From Lenisia limosa (lineage: Eukaryota; Protista; Breviatea), in NCBI GenBank assembly GCA_001655205.1, contig LPNZ01007654.1, positions 6,662-70,661 on the forward strand: DNA of 64,000 nt, in the 5' to 3' direction. Both the position numbers and the translations under genes were made by a program. Numbering within the stretch: the first letter of the stretch is position 1; each line of letters starts with the position of its first letter. The notes beneath the pieces are model-generated. The model did not search any database, was not told where the DNA came from, and saw only the letters and a program-made list of their open reading frames with translations. Positions 6,001 to 61,676 of this stretch are shown here, piece by piece.

Positions 6001-9000
6001 CTGCATCGAATCCCTGACAGAATATAACCAAAGGGTATTGTGAGAATATCGGAGAACACGTCAAAGAAACCCACCCGAATGAACATGGTTTTCCTCTCTG
6101 AAGAGGGGCAGTGTGTTGTTGAGCATCAGTAGGACGGCTCTAAATGCGTGAAGTTAAGGGATACTGGACCAAAAAAGGGAAGTTCTCACCCAACTCACCC
6201 TTCAGCTTGAACTGAGGCGACGCAATTGCGGAAAACGTTAAGGAAGTCATCAAGAGCATCAATAAACGCAGAGTGCTGAAGCATCAAAAAGTAACCAATA
6301 TCTGCGGCCGGGACTTTGTTCCCTTACTGTCACTCTATTGCAATTCCTCCCCCCTCAACCCAAAAAATTGAAACAAAAAAAAAATAATAATAAGTTTAAT
6401 GATAGTTTTATTTCAGTAAAAAAGGAACGTGAACAACGATAGCAAAAAAATGAGTATTCATTTGCAATATCGTAAATAGGTAAAGAGACTAGTTCAGTTC
6501 ATCGGATATTTGATTCACAAAACAATTCCTCTTTTGAAATTTTTGAGCCCACCCTCCTCATCCCAGGTCAATTCCTAAACTAGGCTCTTTATGTTTCTTC
6601 AATATGCAATAGGCCTCCATGAAGGGTAGGTGTTCTGGGGTTTTCAAGCCCCAAACACAATCGTCTGACATGGTTGTCCTCCTGACACTGCAATCCCGGT
6701 TCCCAAATATACCAGACTCGCAATCTCCATAATATTCATATGGAATAAGAAATGAGTATTGAAAGGTTTTCTCAATCAGTCAACAAATAATCCATCCCTT
6801 ACACTTTCACACACAATAGCGATACTCCCACTTACCTAAAATATTAGAGGAATACGAGAAATTCATAAAATAAGTTACATATTTTGAGATAGTAACATGC
6901 TATCAGTTACATAACCTCGAACTACTGTGAAATAAAAAGTATAAAAAAAAACACCGTCCTTCCACCCCATGCTGAATTGCACCGACACACTCTCATGGCA
7001 TCGTCATTGTCAAGGTACTCCCGAGAGCTCGCAGGGAATGTGGACAGGGAGAACTTTTTCAGCGCTTCATCAAGTTTAGAGAGCTGAGTAGGGGTGAGAT
7101 TGAAGAGCTGGGTTGGCGGTTTTATCCACCAAAAGCAAAACAGCGCATTGATTAACTCACATCAGACTTGGACAGTTTGGAGTAAGCCAGAAGAGGAGGG
7201 AGCAGGCTGAGAGCCATGGATTTGAAGGGGAGGGAGTGCTTTCCACTGGGGGGGGGGAGTAAAACGAAGGAAATTTCATGAAACAAGCAATAACAAACAG
7301 GGAGGTGGATAATTTATGAAACAAGAAAAGCCTAAAACAACTCTGTTGGCTGACAACACNNNNNNNNNNNNNNNNNNNNNNNNNNNNNNNNNNNNNNNNN
7401 NNNNNNNNNNNNNNNNNNNNNNNNNNNNNNNNNNNNNNNNNNNNNNNNNNNNNNNNNNNNNNNNNNNNNNNNNNNNNNNNNNNNNNNNNNNNNNNNNNNN
7501 NNNNNNNNNNNNNNNNNNNNNNNNNNNNNNNNNNNNNNNNNNNNNNNTTCACAGAGGGCAGTAATAATGGGGGCAACTGCGTTTTCCATTGAATCTCCAT
7601 CATCGAAATACCTACGTGCATTAAAATAGTAATATGAGAAGCTGAGATATAAAAACAATTGCTTTGTTTCTGCATTCCCCAGGGATCACGATGATCAACA
7701 ACTTTAACCCTGATACCCCTGAGCCGCATTGAGAGTTCCAAGCTTGAGTGCTGATTGGAATATTGCCATCACTGCCCGGCCCGGGCTTTCGAACCGATGA
7801 TCCTGGGGGGGGGGTACTATCATTTGCATAGTGAAGAGCATATCACTTGAATAATGAAGAGCATATCACTTGAATAATGAAGAGCATATCGTACTACACC
7901 TTAGATAACGGAGATAAACAAGAAAAATAGGGAGGCAATACTTTTACTGAATAAAGATGTGTGTGTCTCCATATTTAAGAAAATGAACAAACTTTATCCA
8001 TCACAAACCATCACAAACAGTACACTATACCAGCTCCCTTCACTGCCTTACAGAGTCTGTCAGGCGTTGAGCCGTCCGCGTAATTCCTGATGCCCATTGT
8101 ACAATCGAGGCCGATGACTGCGGTGTAAAATTAAAATGTGCTCAAGGTGTGAAATCAAAATGTGTTCAAGCTTTGTTATTCAGGTACAAAACGCCCCTCC
8201 TACCGAAAGGACGTAAGCAGCCATTTTCTCCCGAACATGTTTTTCCTCTTGCATGGCCTTCCGAAGCGCCGAATTCAGAATCTCAATGACAAGGGTTGGA
8301 TGCTGTATTCGTCAAAACGACAAACATGGAAGTAGGGTTTCACTTCGGCTCAATAAAAGACTGAATTTCTCCATGAATCCGAAAACTATCGGTATTTTGC
8401 CAGTCTTTTTCGAACCTAAGTAAAACCCTACAGGAAGCAGACCCCCACCTCAGCAACCCTGCCGCATGGCTCCCCCACCTCAGCAACCCTGCCGCATAGC
8501 TCCTTCGTGTAGTCCTTGATGTCCTTGAGATACGCCGTGTTGATGGCGTCCGAGAATCGCGAATAGAACGGGGCAATGTCCCCTGCTGACGCTGGCGACC
8601 TGTCGTGTCAAAAATGCCCAAAGAATCGGAAAAAAGGGCAAAAACATGAGAGAGAGAAAGTGAGAGGCAGGCAGAGACAAAGGTGTCAGGGGTGCTCACA
8701 TTTTGATGATTTGATCTATGATGGGTTCTTTTGAAGTGGCTTTGTTGAGGGCATAACTCACCAGTCGTGATGATAGGAACTGTGGGTGTGGGTGATGATA
8801 TTGATTAAAAAGTTTGTGGCATGTAAAATCGTAGCTGATGAAAGGCGTTCAACTACATCAAGAACACAGCTTACGGCGTTCTCAGGGGAGGCCGAGAGAG
8901 CTGTCGAAACCTTGACCAGGATCTCCTGGGGGCTTTGCTCATTGAAGGGCTGGCCTGAGTGGGTCATTTATTGGACCTGTCAATGTCTTTACCAACCAGA

Positions 9001-47699: not shown

Positions 47700-49621
47700 T
47701 TAGTGGTTTTTGACTGGAGCGCTCATATTCGACTAAAGCGTGAGATGGTATTTCATAATACAGGATAAGATGCTAGATTAAAATTACAATTGCATTTCCA
47801 TGTGTCTGTCAGACCCCCTCCCACCCAGATCAAGACATTTCCACCACTCATTCCCGTCAAAAGGGCTTGGTGAGAATCAGACCAACTCAGACACGTTGTT
47901 CGATTGAGTATGTGTCTAAAGTCCAAGGAGGCCTGCTGGTCAGGGTCCGGCGGTGCAACAAATGAGACTATTTTACCGTCACTCAGATCGGTCACTGCAA
48001 AGTAGCCTAAAAGGTTACAGAATACCAATAAAGTAGTGTGACGCACCTGTAGAGTAGAAGATATCCGGCTGCTCGGTTGCATCAATGTCATCAGAAACAT
48101 TGAAAGTAATCAAATAGCTAAGATTTGAGAATCAGAAATTTTATTGAGGGTTCATACCGCTCATCCTCAGTAACTTGGAACTGTGTTTCGCTTGGCTGGC
48201 TGTCCCAAATGTAAACGTCCTCAAGATGGTGAAGTAAGTTGCCCTGCTGCGACCAAAGGAATGCCTCTCGGTTCTATATAGTCAACAGAAATGGTACTTG
48301 GAACTGGATTTATCCCCAGCTTACGCAGAAAGTAATGAAGGTTCCTGATTTTGGAAGGTAAATGAAGAGCTGTGGTGAAGGAAACACTTCCTCTGGTAAA
48401 CTCCATGACTCGTCTGTTATCATCTACTTGGTTATTACAATTCAATGACAAATTCAATACCCAATCCGCAGACATTCTTTATTCGGACATTGCTTTCAGT
48501 CTGTTTGATAAACATGAATTCGTCGAACTGCTCAATAAACTCAACCTTTTCAGGACAGGATTGTTGCATTTGGAAGCCCACTTTCTTGAGACGCTAACAA
48601 ATAAATGAGGATAACAAACCACCAACCTCCCCAGTATCGATATCATAAATCAAAAGCGGTACAGTAGCCGAGCTTGGCTCAGGATTCAAAATAGCAAGTG
48701 CAATTCCGGGACAATGTCAATGGAAACAAAAACCTGGTTTTGAAGTCAGCTAACCCTTCTCCCTTGATTGTAATCCTAGGTTTGTATGTTTTCAAACTCC
48801 AAACAGTAAACTTCCTGGAGTAATGAATTGTGAAATACAATTCAACATCCCTCCCTCACTTTCTGCTGCTATCTAACGTCAAAGCCTTGTCATTAAATTG
48901 GTCAAATTCAACATATCCAGGATAACGCAAGTCTTCTTTGCCGAAAAGTCTAAGAACTGACCTGTGAGGTTGTCCTTCTTCAATTGACCTAAACATGTCA
49001 GTCAAATTGAAATTACACTTGGAGTTTTTGCCCTTGTTCAAAGAAGTTTCATACTTACCGGATAGGAATAGCAAAACAAGCAAGGGTATTTTCCTCATTG
49101 TCTCGCTGACGAAGTGTGAGGATCAGGATGTGGTTTCGATATTGATTATGGAAGATTGACAGAATGACCTCATGCTTTGTGAAATTCAGGAAACAAAGAC
49201 GTTTTTGGGTGACTGGTTAGAACAACAGTTTTTTAAAGGGATACAAAATTTAAAATAGGGGGAAAGGGAATAATTAAAAAAAGAAAGGAAGGAGAGAAGA
49301 CAAAAAAAAACATTCACAAAAAATAAATAAAAACTAAAAACACAAAATAAACGAAAAAACGGTAATCAATTGCTGTACAAAGTCCATTTTTACAGAGAGC
49401 AATGACCACATTCTACTTAGTAATTAGGTGAATACCTTCACTAAAATGATATCCACAACTCTGCAACGCTGGTTTAGCGCTGGAACTGGAAATTCTGGAA
49501 TATTTTCAAAGAGATTAACTTTCCAGACGGGATTTAAGTTCTGAAAGCATGTTTGAGAGAACAGCGATGAATTTCGTGAACCTGAGATTTCGCGTTTTCG
49601 CAATATATCCAGAACTATCAT
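47700..49621 (-). CDS. Divergent WD40/beta-propeller protein of the Arabidopsis At3g54190-like family
   Basis: LRKREISGSRNSSLFSQTCFQNL (plant LQRREIS..QERFRNM); IEEGQP..LFGKEDLRYPGYVEFDQFNDKALT (ILRGQP..LFESESLKWPGFVEFDDVNGKVLT); VEFIEQFDEFMFIKQ (VDFIEQFNEKLLVKQ); TTCLSWSDSHQALLTGMSGGNVLIWSN (ITALFYDEERNEIYTGNRHGLVHVWSN). The comparison sequence is from memory. Confidence 0.8.
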
Positions 49622-53709: not shown

Positions 53710-56700
53710 TCAATGGTACGACTCCAATAGAGCTATTCGATTGCGTAGGGTTGAGATCTGCGATCGTTAGTCAAATTCTTGAGTCTGGTTACCTCTCTTT
53801 TAAGGAGGCCAATTTCATCTTCGGGTTCTGGAGTTGGGGGATGAATCAAGATTCCCGGTGCGGCCTTGGCAACCAGCTTTATACCTGGGGGTTATAATCA
53901 TGTAAACTGAAAGACTGAAACTGACATGAAATAGTCAACATTACCGTTCGTACCTTGACCCGTCAAAATGGAAGCGAGAGACTTTGGGATGGTTTTGGGA
54001 AGCTTGGAAACTGAAAAGGGGTTGATAATATCAAATTAAGGAAATGTCTTGAGCAGTAATGGCACTCAAATACTCGATAACGATGAGGATGAGTCCAACC
54101 TTTTCCTTCAGTGCGCTGTATTGAAGCCGACTCCAACCCAGGCTAACAAGTGAAATTGCCATAAGACACCCACAATAATAAAGACAAAAAACATGGTTAT
54201 AACGACAAAAAACAAAGTTACAACAACAAAGAACAAAGTTACAAATAATGTGTAGAGTGGCACGGTACACGTTGATGCTTACATTTTGCAAACTGTTGAG
54301 TCTATGCTTCCTCAGTCTCTCCATTGTATCAGGTAGCATTGTGGATACCACAGTACCATATTGACTTGCTGTCCTTGTTTGCTCAGGGCCTTTTGTTGAC
54401 AATTTGATGTTACTGGCCTTCTGTCCCGTTTTGCCAGTCAAATAGATGATTTTGCTGACTTTGCCTTTTAGCAGCGGAAGTTCTGTTGACAAGGCTTGGG
54501 ATGAAGTCGCAGGAGTGTCCTGTTGCAAGAGCTGAACAGGAGACGTCGGAGAGTCCACATTGATGACCAAAGGTGTTGCTGGTGAGAGTTTTGGGGTCAG
54601 TTTGAGTTTGGTCACAATGGGAGTGTTTGACTTCACCTGTGCCTCAAGATTGGAGATATGTCTGGTGAATTGTGACGAAGGGTTGTGAGGAGAGGGTATA
54701 ACAACACTGGTGCTACCTCCTCCTCCTCTTGAAGAGGATGTCTGGTTGATCCTGAATGTTGGGATGCTTAGCTGCGAAGGGTTTGGAGATGGTGTCTCGT
54801 TCACCTGCTTTTTGATTTGGGATAGTCCCTAATACGTAAATGCCAATTGTCACAAAACCCATATTTTCCCATACCCACCAATTTAGGTCCTCCACACAGC
54901 CATCCTTGGGTTGTGCTCCATTGTGAAGCACGTGACAATGGGCGACACTCATCTTCAGTGCAAACTGCCACTTCGGTGGTGGTCTCTATTGGTGGAGACC
55001 CTATAATATTTGAGATGCAAGTGCTACCCTCGGCTCTGAATTATACTTCGTTGTTAATTCATCAATACCTGTTGTTGACGTCTCTTGTATGAGTTCTAAC
55101 GTGTGGTATTGCACGTTCAGCAAAGGATGTCCTTCGTAACAACTTCAAAGTTACAATCAAATTGGAAAGACTAATAGTTCACTTTGACAGTACCTATTGT
55201 GAATAACAACTCCATCTGGACGTGCCATATGTTGTGATGCGCTGCTTGCTGCCACGACAGCGCCCCATGCCATATATCTGGGCTGATAGCTGCTAATTAC
55301 CCCGCAAACTAAGAATGTGAGGACAGTGTGACTTGATTGTCACTTGTGAAATGGACAAATGTTGTTTTGATAAAAAAAATTAAAAGGCAAGACAAATACT
55401 AACCTGCACTGCCAAAAGCAATTCCAGCAGAAATCTACAATGTGAGCCAGTGATTTCCTGTAACAGATGTAACAAAACAGCCAACTTGGGTCCAGAAACC
55501 AATACCTTTGGAAGAGTATTATCATGAAGCCCCAGATTCTTCAGTTGTGTCAAGATACGTTTGATTGTTGAAGGTAAATCCAAAGCCAAACCAAACATCT
55601 GAATCTGTAATAATCCAAAACCTGATTATATATGTTGCTATTGTGATGCACTTGTTATAACAATGAACAACATTGAATTAAAAGTTTCAAATAGCCCCAT
55701 TTGTCTTACACTATCAATGGGGTTACCATCAAGACCAGGCAGTCCAGACATGATCCAAAACCTGAAGAAGTGAAAGTGGGGCAAATTTGTCACGTTTTTA
55801 TCACAAGAGTTATGTAAACATCTTGTTGTAAACGTCTTGTTATGAAAATATATTTCAATCTACTTATTACTACTCAATCCACCACAAAGTATCCTTACGA
55901 GGGTCCGCATTGTGCAAGGCGATACACATTAGGGTGGCCAATGGTGAGATTGTCCAACTCCTTCCCAAATGTTTGAATGGCTTGTGTGGCCTGTATGCTC
56001 ATCAGGATTGGTTATTAGCATACCTGTGTCGCATCAACCTCTTGATTCCATTTCATGAATTGAATAATATTGACGTTCATCACTGCAATCTAAAGCATGG
56101 TTAGTGGAACACTTGACTGATATCCTATCTCACCTCATCTAGTTGCTCCCAAAGGAAGTCACTACCAGGTTTAAACACGGACAAGTCGTGAAATACTCCA
56201 TTATCCTTCTCAAGCTTCTTAGTATCTACAAGAAATATTTAGAATATGAATTATCAATTCTTTCCCCACAAAGTTGCCAACCTTTGCTTTCTGTTGATTG
56301 ATTGACAGCTTTGTGAAGATGCTGAGCCTCTTTGCGAGATTGTCTTGATCCTATGTGTGAATCAAGCGCATCAATAAGCTTATTCAAGTTTAATTTTGTG
56401 TTTGATAATATTTATTATTAACCTTACCAAAAAACGTTGTAATAACTTTTGTTGTCAAGCCCTCCTGTATTTTGTCATCGGAGTCCAGGGCAGCGTCCGA
56501 CTTTTCGTCCAACTGAACAGGTTGCCCAAGGTAACATTCGGACAGGTGACAAAGAGGAAGTAAAACATTACTTACAATATAATGATATAACCTCACCTGA
56601 ATCATTAGTGGGATTACATGTGGGGGAAACGCTCGGAGAAGGAGATCAATAACCTCCTGTGTCATCAAATGCCTAAGTGATGAATAGTATAACAAAGCAG

Positions 56701-59700
56701 ACAATCATCAAATGCCTAAGTGATGAATATAACAAAGCAGACAGTCATCAAATTTCTAAGTGATGAAAATAACAGCAGACAGTCATCAAAATCGTCAAGA
56801 CTTATTAGTTTCGCCTTCGTCCACACCGTTCAATTGAAAACAGGAAAAGGACTCTCCTCATTTTGATCATTACGGCTGACACATAAAGTGAAAACACACC
56901 AACAACACTCAGAAGAGAAACCGCAATCGTTGCCTGAATTATGAGAGGCAAGTAGCAAAATGACAATTCTATGAAACTGCATCAATCGGTATTTTGTACC
57001 ATCTATTAGAAGTTTTTGAAATTTGTTCATGATTCATTACATAAGTTGAAAAATAACTGCAAACCTCAAGAAAAGGAGTGTCTGCCTTATAGTAGAGAGT
57101 CAATAGATGGAGCAGCGTAATGATCATGACGATTCCTCCTGGCCCTGGTGCTATTCCCAACACTGTTGGAAAGCACAGTAGAACCGTGATGATAGCCATC
57201 CCATTTTCGAAAGACCGCTGAATCTAAATAAGACACGATCTGTTTCCAACACAATTAAAATAGTCATAGATTCTCACATTTGTCGATTCGTCCCCGAAAC
57301 GAATGAAAATGCCGACAGAGAACAACCAAACAGCCCACCATGTTAAGTGTACCCAAACTCTGGGAATCATAAAGAATACAGAGACAGAATTACATCGGAG
57401 TACAAATTTATTTTACATTACAGTACAAAGAGCCACACAAAAGAAACGGAGTGCTCAAAGAATGCACCTTACCTTATTGCTGCCTTTTTTACAATTCTTT
57501 CAAGANNNNNNNNNNNNNNNNNNNNNNNNNNNNNNNNNNNNNNNNNNNNNNNNNNNNNNNNNNNNNNNNNNNNNNNNNNNNNNNNNNNNNNNNNNNNNNN
57601 NNNGTGACCTCACATTTCCTGTTTGGTCATCGGTAACCAAAGATAAAATTGCAGCAATGAAACTAACCAGGAAGCTGAAGATCACCAGTGCCTGGATCTA
57701 AAATAGTTCGCGTGGTATTTGTAATTGTCAATGGTCATATCACATAATATTCAAACACAAATTTAATAGATCCAATACGCGACCCACTTGAGTTCTACTA
57801 CTCCACTCTTGGTACTGGCAAAAGGCTGTTTCGTAGTTCCAGTGCTCAGTCCACCTTAGGGAAAACCTAAAAGGTAATCATTGTGATATTGTGAATTAAA
57901 TTTGCGATAATATACCATGTATTGAAGACAACAGCATTTGACAGCTCCCCTATTGGCATAGAGTTTGCCTCACCAGCTCTGCGGGACGTTGTCGGAAAAC
58001 AAAGGTTCAGCCTCAATTTCGTGTATGTGGGGGGATACAATTTGCGGTTTTTCTAAAGCTGTTGAAGGTTCCTGCGCCCCAGGAGCTGGTGATTGTGATG
58101 GGTATGACATCTCAGTTCTCTGAATCTAAGAAGTCAACTTGTGTTATGTATCAGGCTGAGATAGCTCTCTAGTCGTACCGAAGCTTTAGTTTCAAGCAAA
58201 CTACTGATTGAATTCTTCATAAGGTTATCAACACTGTTAGCCAGAACTTGTTCGGATTGCTCGACTTCCGCTCCAAGTACCTGATGATCATTTCCAAGCA
58301 TAAACCCAAGCCAGAATAGCCCCATCATACCGCATGTAAAGGCTTCAATGTTGTGAATATCTGTTCCTTGAGAGAATCGACCATTTCAGTTGTAATAGGA
58401 ACATCGCTCAATGTGGACAGATAGGCTGGGTCAACAAGGCGCTGAAGGCTGGGGATCTTCTCAAGAAGTTCATCAACATCCATCTGGTAATTAAGTAATA
58501 TACCTGAATGCTGTTGAAATATTTGTGTTTTTGAGCAATAGAAATCTTACCGTACCCGCTTTTCAATTGGGATTTTTGAAGCCAACTCAATCGCCTATGG
58601 GGTGAGGTAACTATGTCCTTACCTGATCACTCAGTTGACCAAGAATGTTCTCTCCTGCAACTTCAAGATGCTGAAATATTGTGGCAAAATCAGCACCAAG
58701 TTGACCAAGTACCTTGCCTACAGATGAGTCTCAATTTTTGAATTTACCTTGAGACGCAATGTAGTTACCCATTATATCCTTATTGTTGCTGAAAGTGGCT
58801 TGAAAGTCACTCAATGACTTTGTTCCTGTCTTAATTGTCTGAGCAACTAACTAAGAATGTAAATATAAAATGTTCTATAGTCCAAATATGACAGAAAGCT
58901 GAATTACCCCTGACTTTCAGAGGTTCAGAGGTAGACTCTTGTAAAGTCTTGCCAATCTACAAAGTCATGAAAAATAAGCAGATAAAACCGAGGATAATAA
59001 AACAGAAATTTGTCAATAGATTATCCCAAAAAGTCACCTCGTCAATCCAAGGGAAAAGACCTGCTTGTTTCTTCCATTTCTGAAAGACTTGGCTTGAGTC
59101 ATATTGACGACTTAACCACATATTACGGCAAATCGCCATTTTAGAGAGATGTAATTTGAAGTACTGAAGATGTTAACTTCACCAAACTCCAAGGATGCAA
59201 AATGAAACCAACCTGTATGGGACATTTGGCTGGTTGGTTTTTTGGTCGAAATCCCTGAAAAATGGGACCAAAATAACAATTCGTGAATGAAAAGATGCCA
59301 TATCAATTAATAATTCATCTCATGCGTCGCACCACTCACCTTAACAACGTACTTATTAGTTGCAGTAATCACGGCTGCTCCCGCATGTGTAACAACAATA
59401 TCACCAGGTTCTCCAACCTATATCGTGACACTTTACCCTTGGAAACGATAAAAACAATACTGCTTACGTTTGCGGCCATATAGTAGTTGTTCATCACCAG
59501 TGTATCCGGCATAAAGCAAACTAACGGGATTAAAATAATACAATTGTTATCAAAAAGGCTCCAAATTACATGTTGGAAACTGTTTGTTGCAAATGGTACC
59601 AGAGCCGGGGGAGGCCCCGAGGCCAATAACGATTGAAGGTTTCGGATAAAGCTTGAACTTTGGGGCTCGTCTAATCAGTTAACATTTTTTGAACTGTTAC

Positions 59701-61676
59701 ACCGAATAGTCAGCAGATCACACACGTTTTGAGTAGGACCGCGAGGTCAACAGCGCCCGTCACAGCCGCCTCTGCAGTGCAAACATTGGGTGCTCCAAAT
59801 GAGAATATCTTTGATTGATGAGAGTGATAATGCAATTGGGGAATGATAATACCAAAATAAATCTTTTCTTTATCAATATCACGCTTACATGTGATTGCCT
59901 TAAAACGTCCAGGATATAGCCTCCATGTGAAACTGCTAACTCTACAGTATGAAGGTAATTCCCTGTCTCGTGTTGATAAATTCTGATTGTTGGCCAACCT
60001 TCAATTTCTTGTGTGTATTTGAACATCCATTTTGTGAAATCTTGTGCCTGTGATGTCAGTTTCAGCTGTCTTGCGTTAATTATAGCTTACATTTAGATTT
60101 TCCTCAAGCTCTTTAAAGTTTACGAGGTTAACAAAGACAATGAATACCATTTCGAATACATGGATTTCTTTGCTGAGTTCCGAAGAGCATTGCTATAGGG
60201 TTCAATTTTTACAATATGATATGATTATTAAAAATGAACATCTGGCAAACCAAAAGACACTCCAAAGGCGATAGTCGAGCTTTTAGCAGCTGAACATCGG
60301 ACTTGAGCTTCACCATTGATTCTCTGTTGGTATTTAACAGTTGCCGGAGGGATGTCTTTTCAATTGCTATAAACTGCATGACAATTATTCTTGAACATTA
60401 GTAAATGCAACAGAAATTACCCGAAAAGCAGAAAGAAAAATGTTTTAGCTGATTTCTCAAGCTGTAAATCTGACTCGGAACTAACAGCTAAAACTAAAAC
60501 TATCAGTGGGAACAATACATGCCGTATTAACACTTCACAATGCTGTCTCGTACTCAATAGAAGGGCCACAAAAATAGCAGTAAAAACAGCTCTTCCCTGG
60601 TGAATTAACCCTCCCATTTCACTAAATTGTCAACTAAACAAGACAGTGGTTGAAGTTTAGCTCTTATTTTCAACTTACATCACAATCAAAAGGAAGGCAA
60701 AATGTTTGGCTCTGATTGGTTATTGAAGAAGTTACCAAAACTCACATGTAATAATTGCTTCGAGTGGGATAGGCTAAAACAGTTATTTAAAATTAGATTA
60801 TTGGCCATACTGAATGTTTTGAATTACACCATACCTGAATCTTCATATGTTGACACAACAAGAACTGAAACAAGGCAAAAAATCCACACAATTCCAAGAA
60901 TAACCTCAAGAGAATAATAAGCTCAAATGTGCATGTATTTCTACCTGGATTTTGATTTTCTCTATTCCAAGAAGATCTCTAAGAGATTAGTGTTTAGAAA
61001 GGCACAGGTGTTTCACATGACAAACAGCATACAGTACTTCTTTTGCTGTGCTGGTTTTGAGAGTGCTTCGACATATCATGAAACGGACACCTATCATCTA
61101 GGCATGATTAGGACCAATGGTATTCAACTATAACATACCATAAGTATTGATATAGAGTACAGTATTATTTCAGTTTCTAAAGATCCTCCACCTGCTTGTC
61201 CACTTATCCTAAAATGTAATTTTGAATTACAATAGTGACAACAAGCTCCACCAACACATCAAACAATCCTGTTGTCAAAAGCAAAACTGCCATAAACAGA
61301 GATGACACCTGAATCAGTAACCAAGTGTATCACAATTGTAATGCCAAAAGTGGACATTGGATATTGGTTCTATAACAATTACCACAAACCTTACCTTGAA
61401 CTCTTCATAGCCATGAATTATCCTGTTTTTCTCTTTTGGAATTTTAACTGGAAATTCTTCTGTTTTGGTATCATCCTCGGATATTTCAGAGCTATCATCT
61501 GTAGAACTATTGGCAGAACCTATATCGTGATATACAGTTATCCAATGCATATCACAACATAGGTATTTTCACTACATATGATATCAGCCAAAATATTGCT
61601 TGCAGCATTTCCACTTACTACCAGCTTCCATGTTTCTCTTCTGAGACGAAGATTGCTCCTCATTGACAGAGTTCAT
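53710..61676 (-). CDS. Transmembrane class III nucleotidyl cyclase-like protein (TM block-C1-TM block-C2-low-complexity tail), probable pseudoenzyme
   Basis: Hydrophobic exons at 60400-61330 and 56830-57700. C1-like: VFIVFVNLVNFKEL, IRIYQHETGNYL, IVIGLGASPGSV, NVGEPGDIVVT. Pre-C2 helix: IDLLLRAFPPHV. C2-like: IAVMNVNIIQF, FWIMSGLPG, MFGLALDL, VCGVISSYQPRYMAWGAVVAASS..ARPDGVVI. Some exon joins are unresolved. Confidence 0.72.
56661..56790. repeat. Intronic tandem repeat, ~40-bp unit x3, adjacent to an acceptor of the cyclase-like gene
   Basis: GTCATCAAATGCCTAAGTGATGAAT..AACAAAGCAGACA repeats with small indels. Confidence 0.85.

Follow-up and report, generated by a model that had tools for sequence, protein, structure and literature searches.

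The window analysed here, a stretch of 64,000 nucleotides from contig LPNZ01007654.1 of the breviate Lenisia limosa, carries on its minus strand (61676-53733) an intron-dense gene of about 43 exons whose predicted product has the layout of a membrane-bound adenylyl cyclase and in which both cyclase domains appear to be catalytically dead. From the N-terminus, the protein would consist of a six-helix block, a first cyclase-homology domain (C1), a linker of ~330 residues, a second six-helix block, a second cyclase-homology domain (C2) and a tail rich in serine, threonine and proline (S/T/P-rich). Both domains seem to keep the sequence pattern of the core strands and helices of the cyclase fold, and the two metal-binding aspartates, the substrate-specifying pair and the transition-state Asn/Arg pair are gone from each of them. 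Because the residues on which catalysis in this family depends are lacking, we file the gene as a pseudoenzyme of the 12-helix pseudoheterodimeric cyclase kind and not as a cyclase. It probably encodes a non-enzymatic membrane protein, and the explanation that we favour, with moderate confidence, is that this protein would be a functional representative of the two-domain membrane cyclases that has lost its catalysis. It belongs to this explanation that the locus most likely holds one intact, single-copy gene encoding a protein of ~1,650 residues.

Cyclase homology and catalytic positions of C1 and C2

Homology searches were made exon by exon, or open reading frame (ORF) piece by ORF piece. The only Pfam family matched by any exon was PF00211, with which exon 6 of C2 aligned over profile positions 111-149 of 183 (14.7 bits, E 0.023 for the ORF piece; 12.7 bits, E 0.096 for the exact exon). 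Twenty further ORF pieces from the linker, the membrane blocks and the tail had no match in Pfam, and none was found in Rfam. Sequence searches of the PDB with two of the exons returned matches that were set aside as spurious.

A home-made profile was built from bacterial cyclase loci (24 fetched, 22 used), and a broader version of it additionally contained 49 exon fragments from cyclases of the L. limosa genome itself. Among the 548 ORF pieces that the locus has on its two strands, the broader profile matched four, which lie on the gene strand and occupy collinear profile positions: the first strand of C1 (9.2 bits, E 0.041, positions 32-55), the last C1 exon (1.4 bits, E not significant, positions 171-184), the first strand of C2 (2.1 bits, E not significant, positions 38-59) and C2 exon 6 (14.9 bits, E 7.6e-4, positions 140-180).

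The two regions were further subjected to a collinear chain test, in which ungapped segments were scored exon by exon and compared with residue-shuffled exons (n=400 shuffles). With the broader profile, the score of the C2 chain (z 5.9) was reached by 0/400 shuffles and that of the C1 chain (z 3.2) by 1/400; with the bacteria-only profile the corresponding counts were 0/400 for C2 (z 4.2) and 21/400 for C1 (z 1.7). An earlier and looser form of the test, which admitted segments of 1-5 residues, had been uninformative (C1 93.0 against a null of 87.2, C2 99.7 against 92.6), and the settings were then tightened. The core elements that were checked (the h-h-F-x-D-h-x-x-F strand, the G-D turn, the R-I-G-I-H-x-G strand, the G-D-x-V-N-x-A-x-R helix and the P-G-x-I strand) occur in collinear order in both domains by profile matches and chain test on exons that were chosen by eye, and the two metal positions are separated by 45 residues in C2 and by 42 or 48 in C1, the canonical spacing being 44. 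From these comparisons, the identification of C2 as a cyclase-homology domain appears well supported and that of C1 moderately supported, and the cyclase homology of the locus as a whole seems weak but real.

It could be objected that the locus has no relation to cyclases, and that the motif likeness arose by chance in a hydrophobic, multi-exon membrane protein. Such a view can point to the absence of any exon above the Pfam threshold, to the spurious PDB matches and to the genome searches with PF00211, which match 116 exon-sized places in the 49-Mb assembly and leave this locus out. However, PF00211 is the sole Pfam match and falls at the right positions, four profile matches are collinear and confined to the gene strand, the chain tests came out positive and the spacing of the metal positions is near-canonical. 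Furthermore, the domain is present twice, each time after a six-helix block, and we regard a chance likeness as very improbable.

In the numbering of the home-made profile, the key positions are Asp43 and Asp87 for the metals, Lys/Glu83 and Asp/Cys152 for the substrate, and Asn159 and Arg163 for the transition state. A substrate pair of Lys and Asp specifies ATP, and one of Glu with Cys, Ser or Thr specifies GTP. HMMER alignments give positions 43, 159 and 163 of C2 and position 43 of C1, and the remaining ones were read by hand alignment, from the diagonals of the chain test and from spacing. At 43/83/87/152/159/163, C1 reads N/H/N/C/V/Y and C2 reads N/A/P/M/A/A. In C1, both metal aspartates are thus replaced by asparagine (codon AAC in FVNL, codon AAT in TGNY), a histidine stands at the substrate Lys/Glu position and a cysteine at the second substrate position, and the Asn/Arg pair has given way to Val and Tyr. 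In C2, the first metal Asp is an Asn (in NVNI) and the second a Pro (in CGPS), Ala and Met occupy the two substrate positions, and both Asn and Arg are Ala (in VVAASSAS). The second metal position of C2 was also tried on TIGH and this placement was rejected, its spacing and its fit to the next exon being worse; an Asp is absent there too. CGPS was preferred because its spacing is canonical (45 compared with 44) and because an indel-free diagonal leads from it to the next exon.

Hence the metal Asp pair, the substrate pair and the Asn/Arg pair are missing from both domains, and a single live site composed of Asp/Asp from C1 and Lys/Asp plus Asn/Arg from C2 is missing in either orientation. At the level of sequence it is shown that no orientation of the C1/C2 dimer could form a canonical two-metal active site; neither of the two C1-C2 interface pockets, nor any homodimer or heterodimer, would be expected to cyclise a nucleotide by the known two-metal mechanism. 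A preliminary description of this DNA, made from its letters alone, had named the five motifs FVNL, TGNY, NVNI, CGPS and VVAASSAS and concluded that neither orientation of the dimer could be active. All five were located on the minus strand, and the alignments and chain diagonals lead to the same conclusion. Its C1 residues are likewise right, although one reading frame that it perhaps used does not splice cleanly. It had also allowed for the case that correct splicing brings the catalytic residues back, and the cleanly splicing C1 and C2 exons restore none of them.

A protein of this kind might still be an enzyme, if non-canonical residues such as an Asn-bound metal allowed it to make a cyclic nucleotide or another product, or if it became active only when paired with a live cyclase. 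Asparagine can coordinate metal ions weakly, and both C1 Asn codons are one transition away from Asp codons. In class III cyclases, however, mutagenesis has shown that the loss of either metal Asp abolishes activity. Moreover, neither domain offers the Asn/Arg pair or the substrate pair, and therefore this protein could not complement a partner that lacks either half. Residual catalysis is the explanation to which we give the least credit.

Gene model, membrane blocks and tail

The window has ~40% G+C, is eukaryotic and is full of short exons. The minus strand was read in three frames, an exon-chaining script was applied, and the exons of the cyclase region were set by hand. The script makes exons too long and follows a wrong frame through part of C1, for which reason hand-set exons were substituted there, and the combined model consists of script-chained exons together with the hand-set cyclase exons. 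Through the tail exon, it comprises 43 exons and 1,618 codons with zero internal stops. The script finds an unbroken exon path from the ATG at 61676 to the stop at 53733, and such a path also exists when only AG acceptors are allowed. The best exon chain scored 178 on the gene strand, whereas the reverse strand gave 55 and three shuffled sequences 47-61, and the coding signal is therefore real. In the cyclase regions, six C1 exons and eight C2-region exons are joined in phase by canonical GT..AG introns of 23-137 bases, which agrees with the earlier view that the gene looks intact with open exons. C1 spans model residues ~334-519, the linker 520-850 and C2 ~1199-1384, followed by the 182-codon S/T/P-rich exon; the positions of all parts are collected in Table 1.

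Table 1. Parts of the cyclase-like gene, with positions in the window and the basis of each assignment
Feature	Position	Strand	Basis and remarks
Proposed start codon ATG	61674..61676	minus	exon 1 = 61676-61619; the best chain begins here with or without non-AG acceptors
Membrane block 1, six hydrophobic segments (model residues 70-284, ~eight short exons)	60362..61308	minus	hydropathy; borders provisional
Helix 6 end and helical linker with transducing-element-like ..LL.ARLSP.. just before C1	60213..60389	minus	approximate match only
C1 exon 1, first beta-strand, FVNL for F-x-D-I	60091..60172	minus	motif 60135-60124; profile match and alignment
C1 exon 2, TGNY for I-G-D-x	59889..60047	minus	motif 59966-59955; chain diagonal pairs TGN with IGD
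C1 exons 3-6	59808-59726, 59670-59570, 59520-59468, 59417-59340	minus	collinear profile segments (positions 103-113, 129-134, 157-159, 168-178, 189-198)
Linker from C1 to block 2, ~330 residues, ~ten short exons	57788..59254	minus	exon chain
Membrane block 2, six hydrophobic segments (model residues 853-1046, includes the assembly gap)	56827..57697	minus	hydropathy; L011 fills the gap in frame
Exon with second transducing-element-like motif ..LLLRAFPPHV..	56597..56672	minus	compared with the motif before animal C2
C2 exon 1, first beta-strand, NVNI for F-x-D-I	56024..56089	minus	motif 56077-56066; chain segment 13.7 bits; in another profile run 3.9 bits, positions 37-59
C2 exons 2-3, CGPS then ..SGLP for I-G-D-A ...F-G-x-P	55990-55899, 55761-55710	minus	CGP(S) 55909-55899; indel-free from the Gly to the next exon, on the chain diagonal of exon 4
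C2 exons 4-5	55604-55506, 55434-55404	minus	chain segments 109-126 (10.2 bits), 130-139 (12.3 bits)
C2 exon 6, G-A-V-V-A-A-S-S-A for G-D-t-V-N-x-A-x-R	55194..55308	minus	VVAASSAS 55258-55235; PF00211 and profile
C2 exon 7 and next exon	55170-55069 (after 23-base intron), 55035-54879 (after 33-base intron)	minus	in frame, stop-free
Tail exon, 182 codons, Ser/Thr/Pro-rich	54283..54828	minus	database match is the same-locus ORF fragment P0001
Uncertain 3' end, T-rich candidate intron	53733..54282	minus	two alternative stop paths

One part of the gene falls into an assembly gap, a run of 98 N at 57506-57603. An independent ENA metagenome assembly (ERZ3820729, NODE_89, 54,156 bp; here L011), which was retrieved through the protein match P0001 of the tail exon, agrees with the window at 100% identity on both flanks of the N run, for 6,397 bases on one and 13,475 on the other, and it replaces the run by 78 real bases (L011 positions 6671-6748). 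They comprise the closing part of a 35-base GT..AG intron, followed by 55 bases that open an exon for a hydrophobic helix. Since the intron lies in phase 0 relative to the exons on both sides, the frame continues across the gap. In the N-terminal part of the model, a candidate 23-base intron lies at 61230-61208 (minus strand), which begins with GTAATT and ends in ..TTTTAGG; the cut that keeps the frame falls after GG, while a cut at the AG one base earlier breaks it, and an AG-only path through the region also exists. Furthermore, C1 exon 2 may start 18 bases earlier, given a 25-base intron.

Membrane segments were taken as hydrophobic stretches of 19 residues by hydropathy on the combined model, and there are six before C1 and six before C2. 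Together with the exon chain, this supports the previously proposed order of membrane block, C1, membrane block and C2. A conserved 19-residue cyclase-transducing element with an SxL/MP core has been described at a fixed distance before C1 in membrane cyclases (PMC9552081). The ..ARLSP.. motif of the present gene precedes the first metal position of C1 by ~33 residues, a spacing similar to that of the described element, and has an inexact core. The second motif, ..RAFPPHV.., is found ~110 residues upstream of C2. Animal C2 domains are preceded by an LL..ILP..VA motif. The 84 bases after the exon that carries the second motif (56596-56513) are either an in-frame, stop-free intron or coding sequence. 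In the intron and exon start at 56661-56790 (minus strand), a 40-base tandem repeat of 3.2 copies duplicates the 3' end of an intron and ~11 bases of the next exon, and each copy therefore holds a spare ..CACTTAG acceptor.

Could the locus instead be two adjacent genes on the same strand, each encoding six helices and one dead cyclase domain, like bacterial half-cyclases that dimerise? The two halves are linked by no transcript, and the ~330-residue linker between C1 and the second membrane block has no Pfam match (six linker ORF pieces were scanned and no domain was found). However, the in-frame exon chain crosses the linker uninterrupted, with 113 bases as the longest non-coding stretch, and at least seven other loci of the genome have two cyclase domains 3-5 kb apart on one strand, so that a two-domain gene is the local norm. 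We therefore keep to a single gene and consider a split of the locus improbable.

With respect to the C-terminus, the preliminary description had proposed a long S/T/P-rich tail and a short coiled coil. The S/T/P-rich exon is present, whereas the coiled coil is uncertain, since the 3' end is ambiguous after 54283: translation would stop near 53967, or at 53733 by way of exons 54010-53945 and 53884-53733, and it is the latter path that encodes a short charged helix. A 21-base tandem repeat of 2.9 copies (54184-54244) lies in a T-rich stretch, probably the intron that follows the tail exon; if read through, it yields a Cys/Phe-rich, pseudo-hydrophobic stretch that could pass for membrane helices. 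Beyond the gene, the next ORFs on the same (minus) strand, at ~48400-49100 of the window (L011 15156-15819), match PF25463 (DUF7899), and an ORF on the opposite strand near 46530-46800 matches weakly an OLA1/YGR210-type GTPase domain.

Relatives, transcripts and possible role

For comparison, 30 further cyclase loci of the genome were fetched and the key positions were read in 25 of them. All 25 keep a live set, and none is dead in both halves. Single-domain genes in this sample keep the full catalytic set, while in the two-domain genes the first domain carries Asn/Arg and mostly Glu at position 83 and the second domain carries Asp/Asp. The latter is the swapped type, which is known from Dictyostelium GCA and from alveolate guanylyl cyclases, and the substrate positions of the two-domain loci (mostly Glu together with Ser/Thr/Cys) suggest guanylyl rather than adenylyl cyclases. 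Swapped-type loci such as L038-L042, L046 and L048 lie on the G000 contigs C11241, C5834, C8880, C9413, C1112, C4930 and C8619.

The present gene seems to stand alone. When all ORF pieces were compared by tblastn with 35 loci from cyclase contigs (30 of them distinct), only marginal matches appeared, and when the genome itself was searched with three exons and with a 3.8-kb piece of DNA, the locus alone came back, besides a 46-base intronic repeat on another contig. The repeated stretch, 57384-57429, recurs with 87% identity at G000:C1347:2929-2974 and may be a short dispersed repeat. Word searches of the protein database with the tail exon, the C1 ORF and the C2 ORF returned ORF fragments of the own locus or nothing. 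An exhaustive search with a 53-residue C1 exon returned an 88-residue genomic ORF fragment of the locus itself and WD40-repeat proteins, of which the latter were dismissed as repeat-summed noise after a Pfam scan. The gene had initially been called conserved, a claim that finds no support, as neither the protein database nor the own genome yielded an orthologue or close paralogue. Likewise, a literature search of partial coverage found no pseudo-cyclase of this architecture, which is a weak sign of novelty.

Several points speak against a working pseudo-cyclase. No transcript-derived protein was among the matches to the tail exon, the C1 ORF, the C2 ORF and the C1 exon, and no orthologue came out of the same protein searches, nor a close paralogue out of the own genome. 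One junction near the N-terminus may call for either a 23-base GT..GG intron, which does not end in AG, or a different path, and the exon borders of the membrane blocks as well as the 3' end are provisional. As to homology, the best PF00211 score of any exon (14.7 bits) falls short of the gathering score of 21.9 bits, and the C1 chain beats just 379/400 shuffles with the bacteria-only profile. Finally, the exons of the cyclase region were picked by eye with the motifs in mind, and the figures of the chain test are therefore somewhat flattering.

Some of these points would be expected if the locus were a silent or decaying gene, that is, a former two-domain cyclase that is unexpressed and drifting, and that appears open since it died recently or since the model hides its defects. 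The lack of a transcript-derived protein with the exons searched, the extreme divergence from every other cyclase of the genome and the one junction calling for an unusual GT..GG micro-intron would all be in line with such a history. On the other hand, 43/43 exons, which amount to 4.85 kb of coding sequence, are open and in phase, the splice sites of the cyclase-region exons are canonical and the controls reach a third of the chain score. A large amino-acid divergence without a frame break points to a long evolution under constraint to stay open, and the non-catalytic pattern of the fold, with its hydrophobic strands and Gly/Pro turns, has been kept. A silent gene is thus unlikely, although it is the alternative that we take most seriously.

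We therefore return to the reading of a retained, catalytically dead protein. Its long divergence without a frame break over 43 exons argues for selection to keep the protein, and a fold pattern that outlasts the loss of all catalytic residues speaks for a role of the two domains other than catalysis. C1 and C2 may still pair head to tail under the membrane, and the two degenerate pockets of such a pair would correspond to the single regulatory (forskolin-type) pocket of the animal enzymes. The protein might then act without catalysis as a membrane-anchored sensor or scaffold, with an output through the linker and the tail; alternatively, it could be a silent partner that binds regulators or live cyclases. 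The domain pair could serve as a ligand pocket, in partner binding or in the regulation of live cyclases, and the receptor or scaffold role and the nucleotide sensing that the preliminary description had proposed are likewise conjectural.

A further-reaching proposal is that this gene and other candidate double-dead, cyclase-shaped genes of the genome form a retained 12-helix class, in which the six-helix blocks would detect a ligand and the dead pair would signal by partner binding, with an output other than a cyclic nucleotide. We consider this rather doubtful. If true, catalysis and the debated receptor role of the membrane anchors of cyclases would have been separated by nature in such a class.

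Comparison with known cyclases

In the membrane adenylyl cyclases of animals, about a third of the sequence lies in the two six-helix blocks, and the role of these blocks is debated (PMC9552081, PMC12414865). A natural protein that has the full architecture and does not synthesise cAMP would show that the scaffold can be used apart from catalysis, and it would be a clean system for asking what the membrane blocks and a dead domain pair do. Since breviates branch near animals and fungi, the gene also bears on the question how early two-domain membrane cyclases diversified. Its weight is limited, as the case rests on a single orphan gene that looks unexpressed, in a genome whose cyclases are very numerous and often degenerate.

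The domain order and the transducing elements of 12-helix pseudoheterodimeric cyclases have been described (PMC9552081). With animal AC1-9 and Dictyostelium ACA, the predicted protein would share the domain order from the N-terminus through to the C-terminal tail, and short motifs with an approximate likeness to the transducing elements stand before each domain. However, the likeness in sequence is confined to the pattern of the catalytic domains, and the linker before C2, at ~150 residues, is much longer than that of the animal enzymes. Furthermore, the animal enzymes have one degenerate interface pocket, whereas in this gene both would be degenerate, with no catalytic residue in either domain.

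The two-domain cyclases of the own genome resemble the gene in having two domains 3-5 kb apart and many short exons. They are of the swapped type with one live site, whereas the present gene keeps neither set, and by tblastn it shares with them only a marginal match of 31 residues. Half-dead subunits such as sGC beta offer another parallel, since their cyclase-fold domains lack some of the catalytic residues and are kept as working parts of a signalling protein. However, sGC beta still supplies half an active site to its partner, while the protein predicted here could supply neither half.

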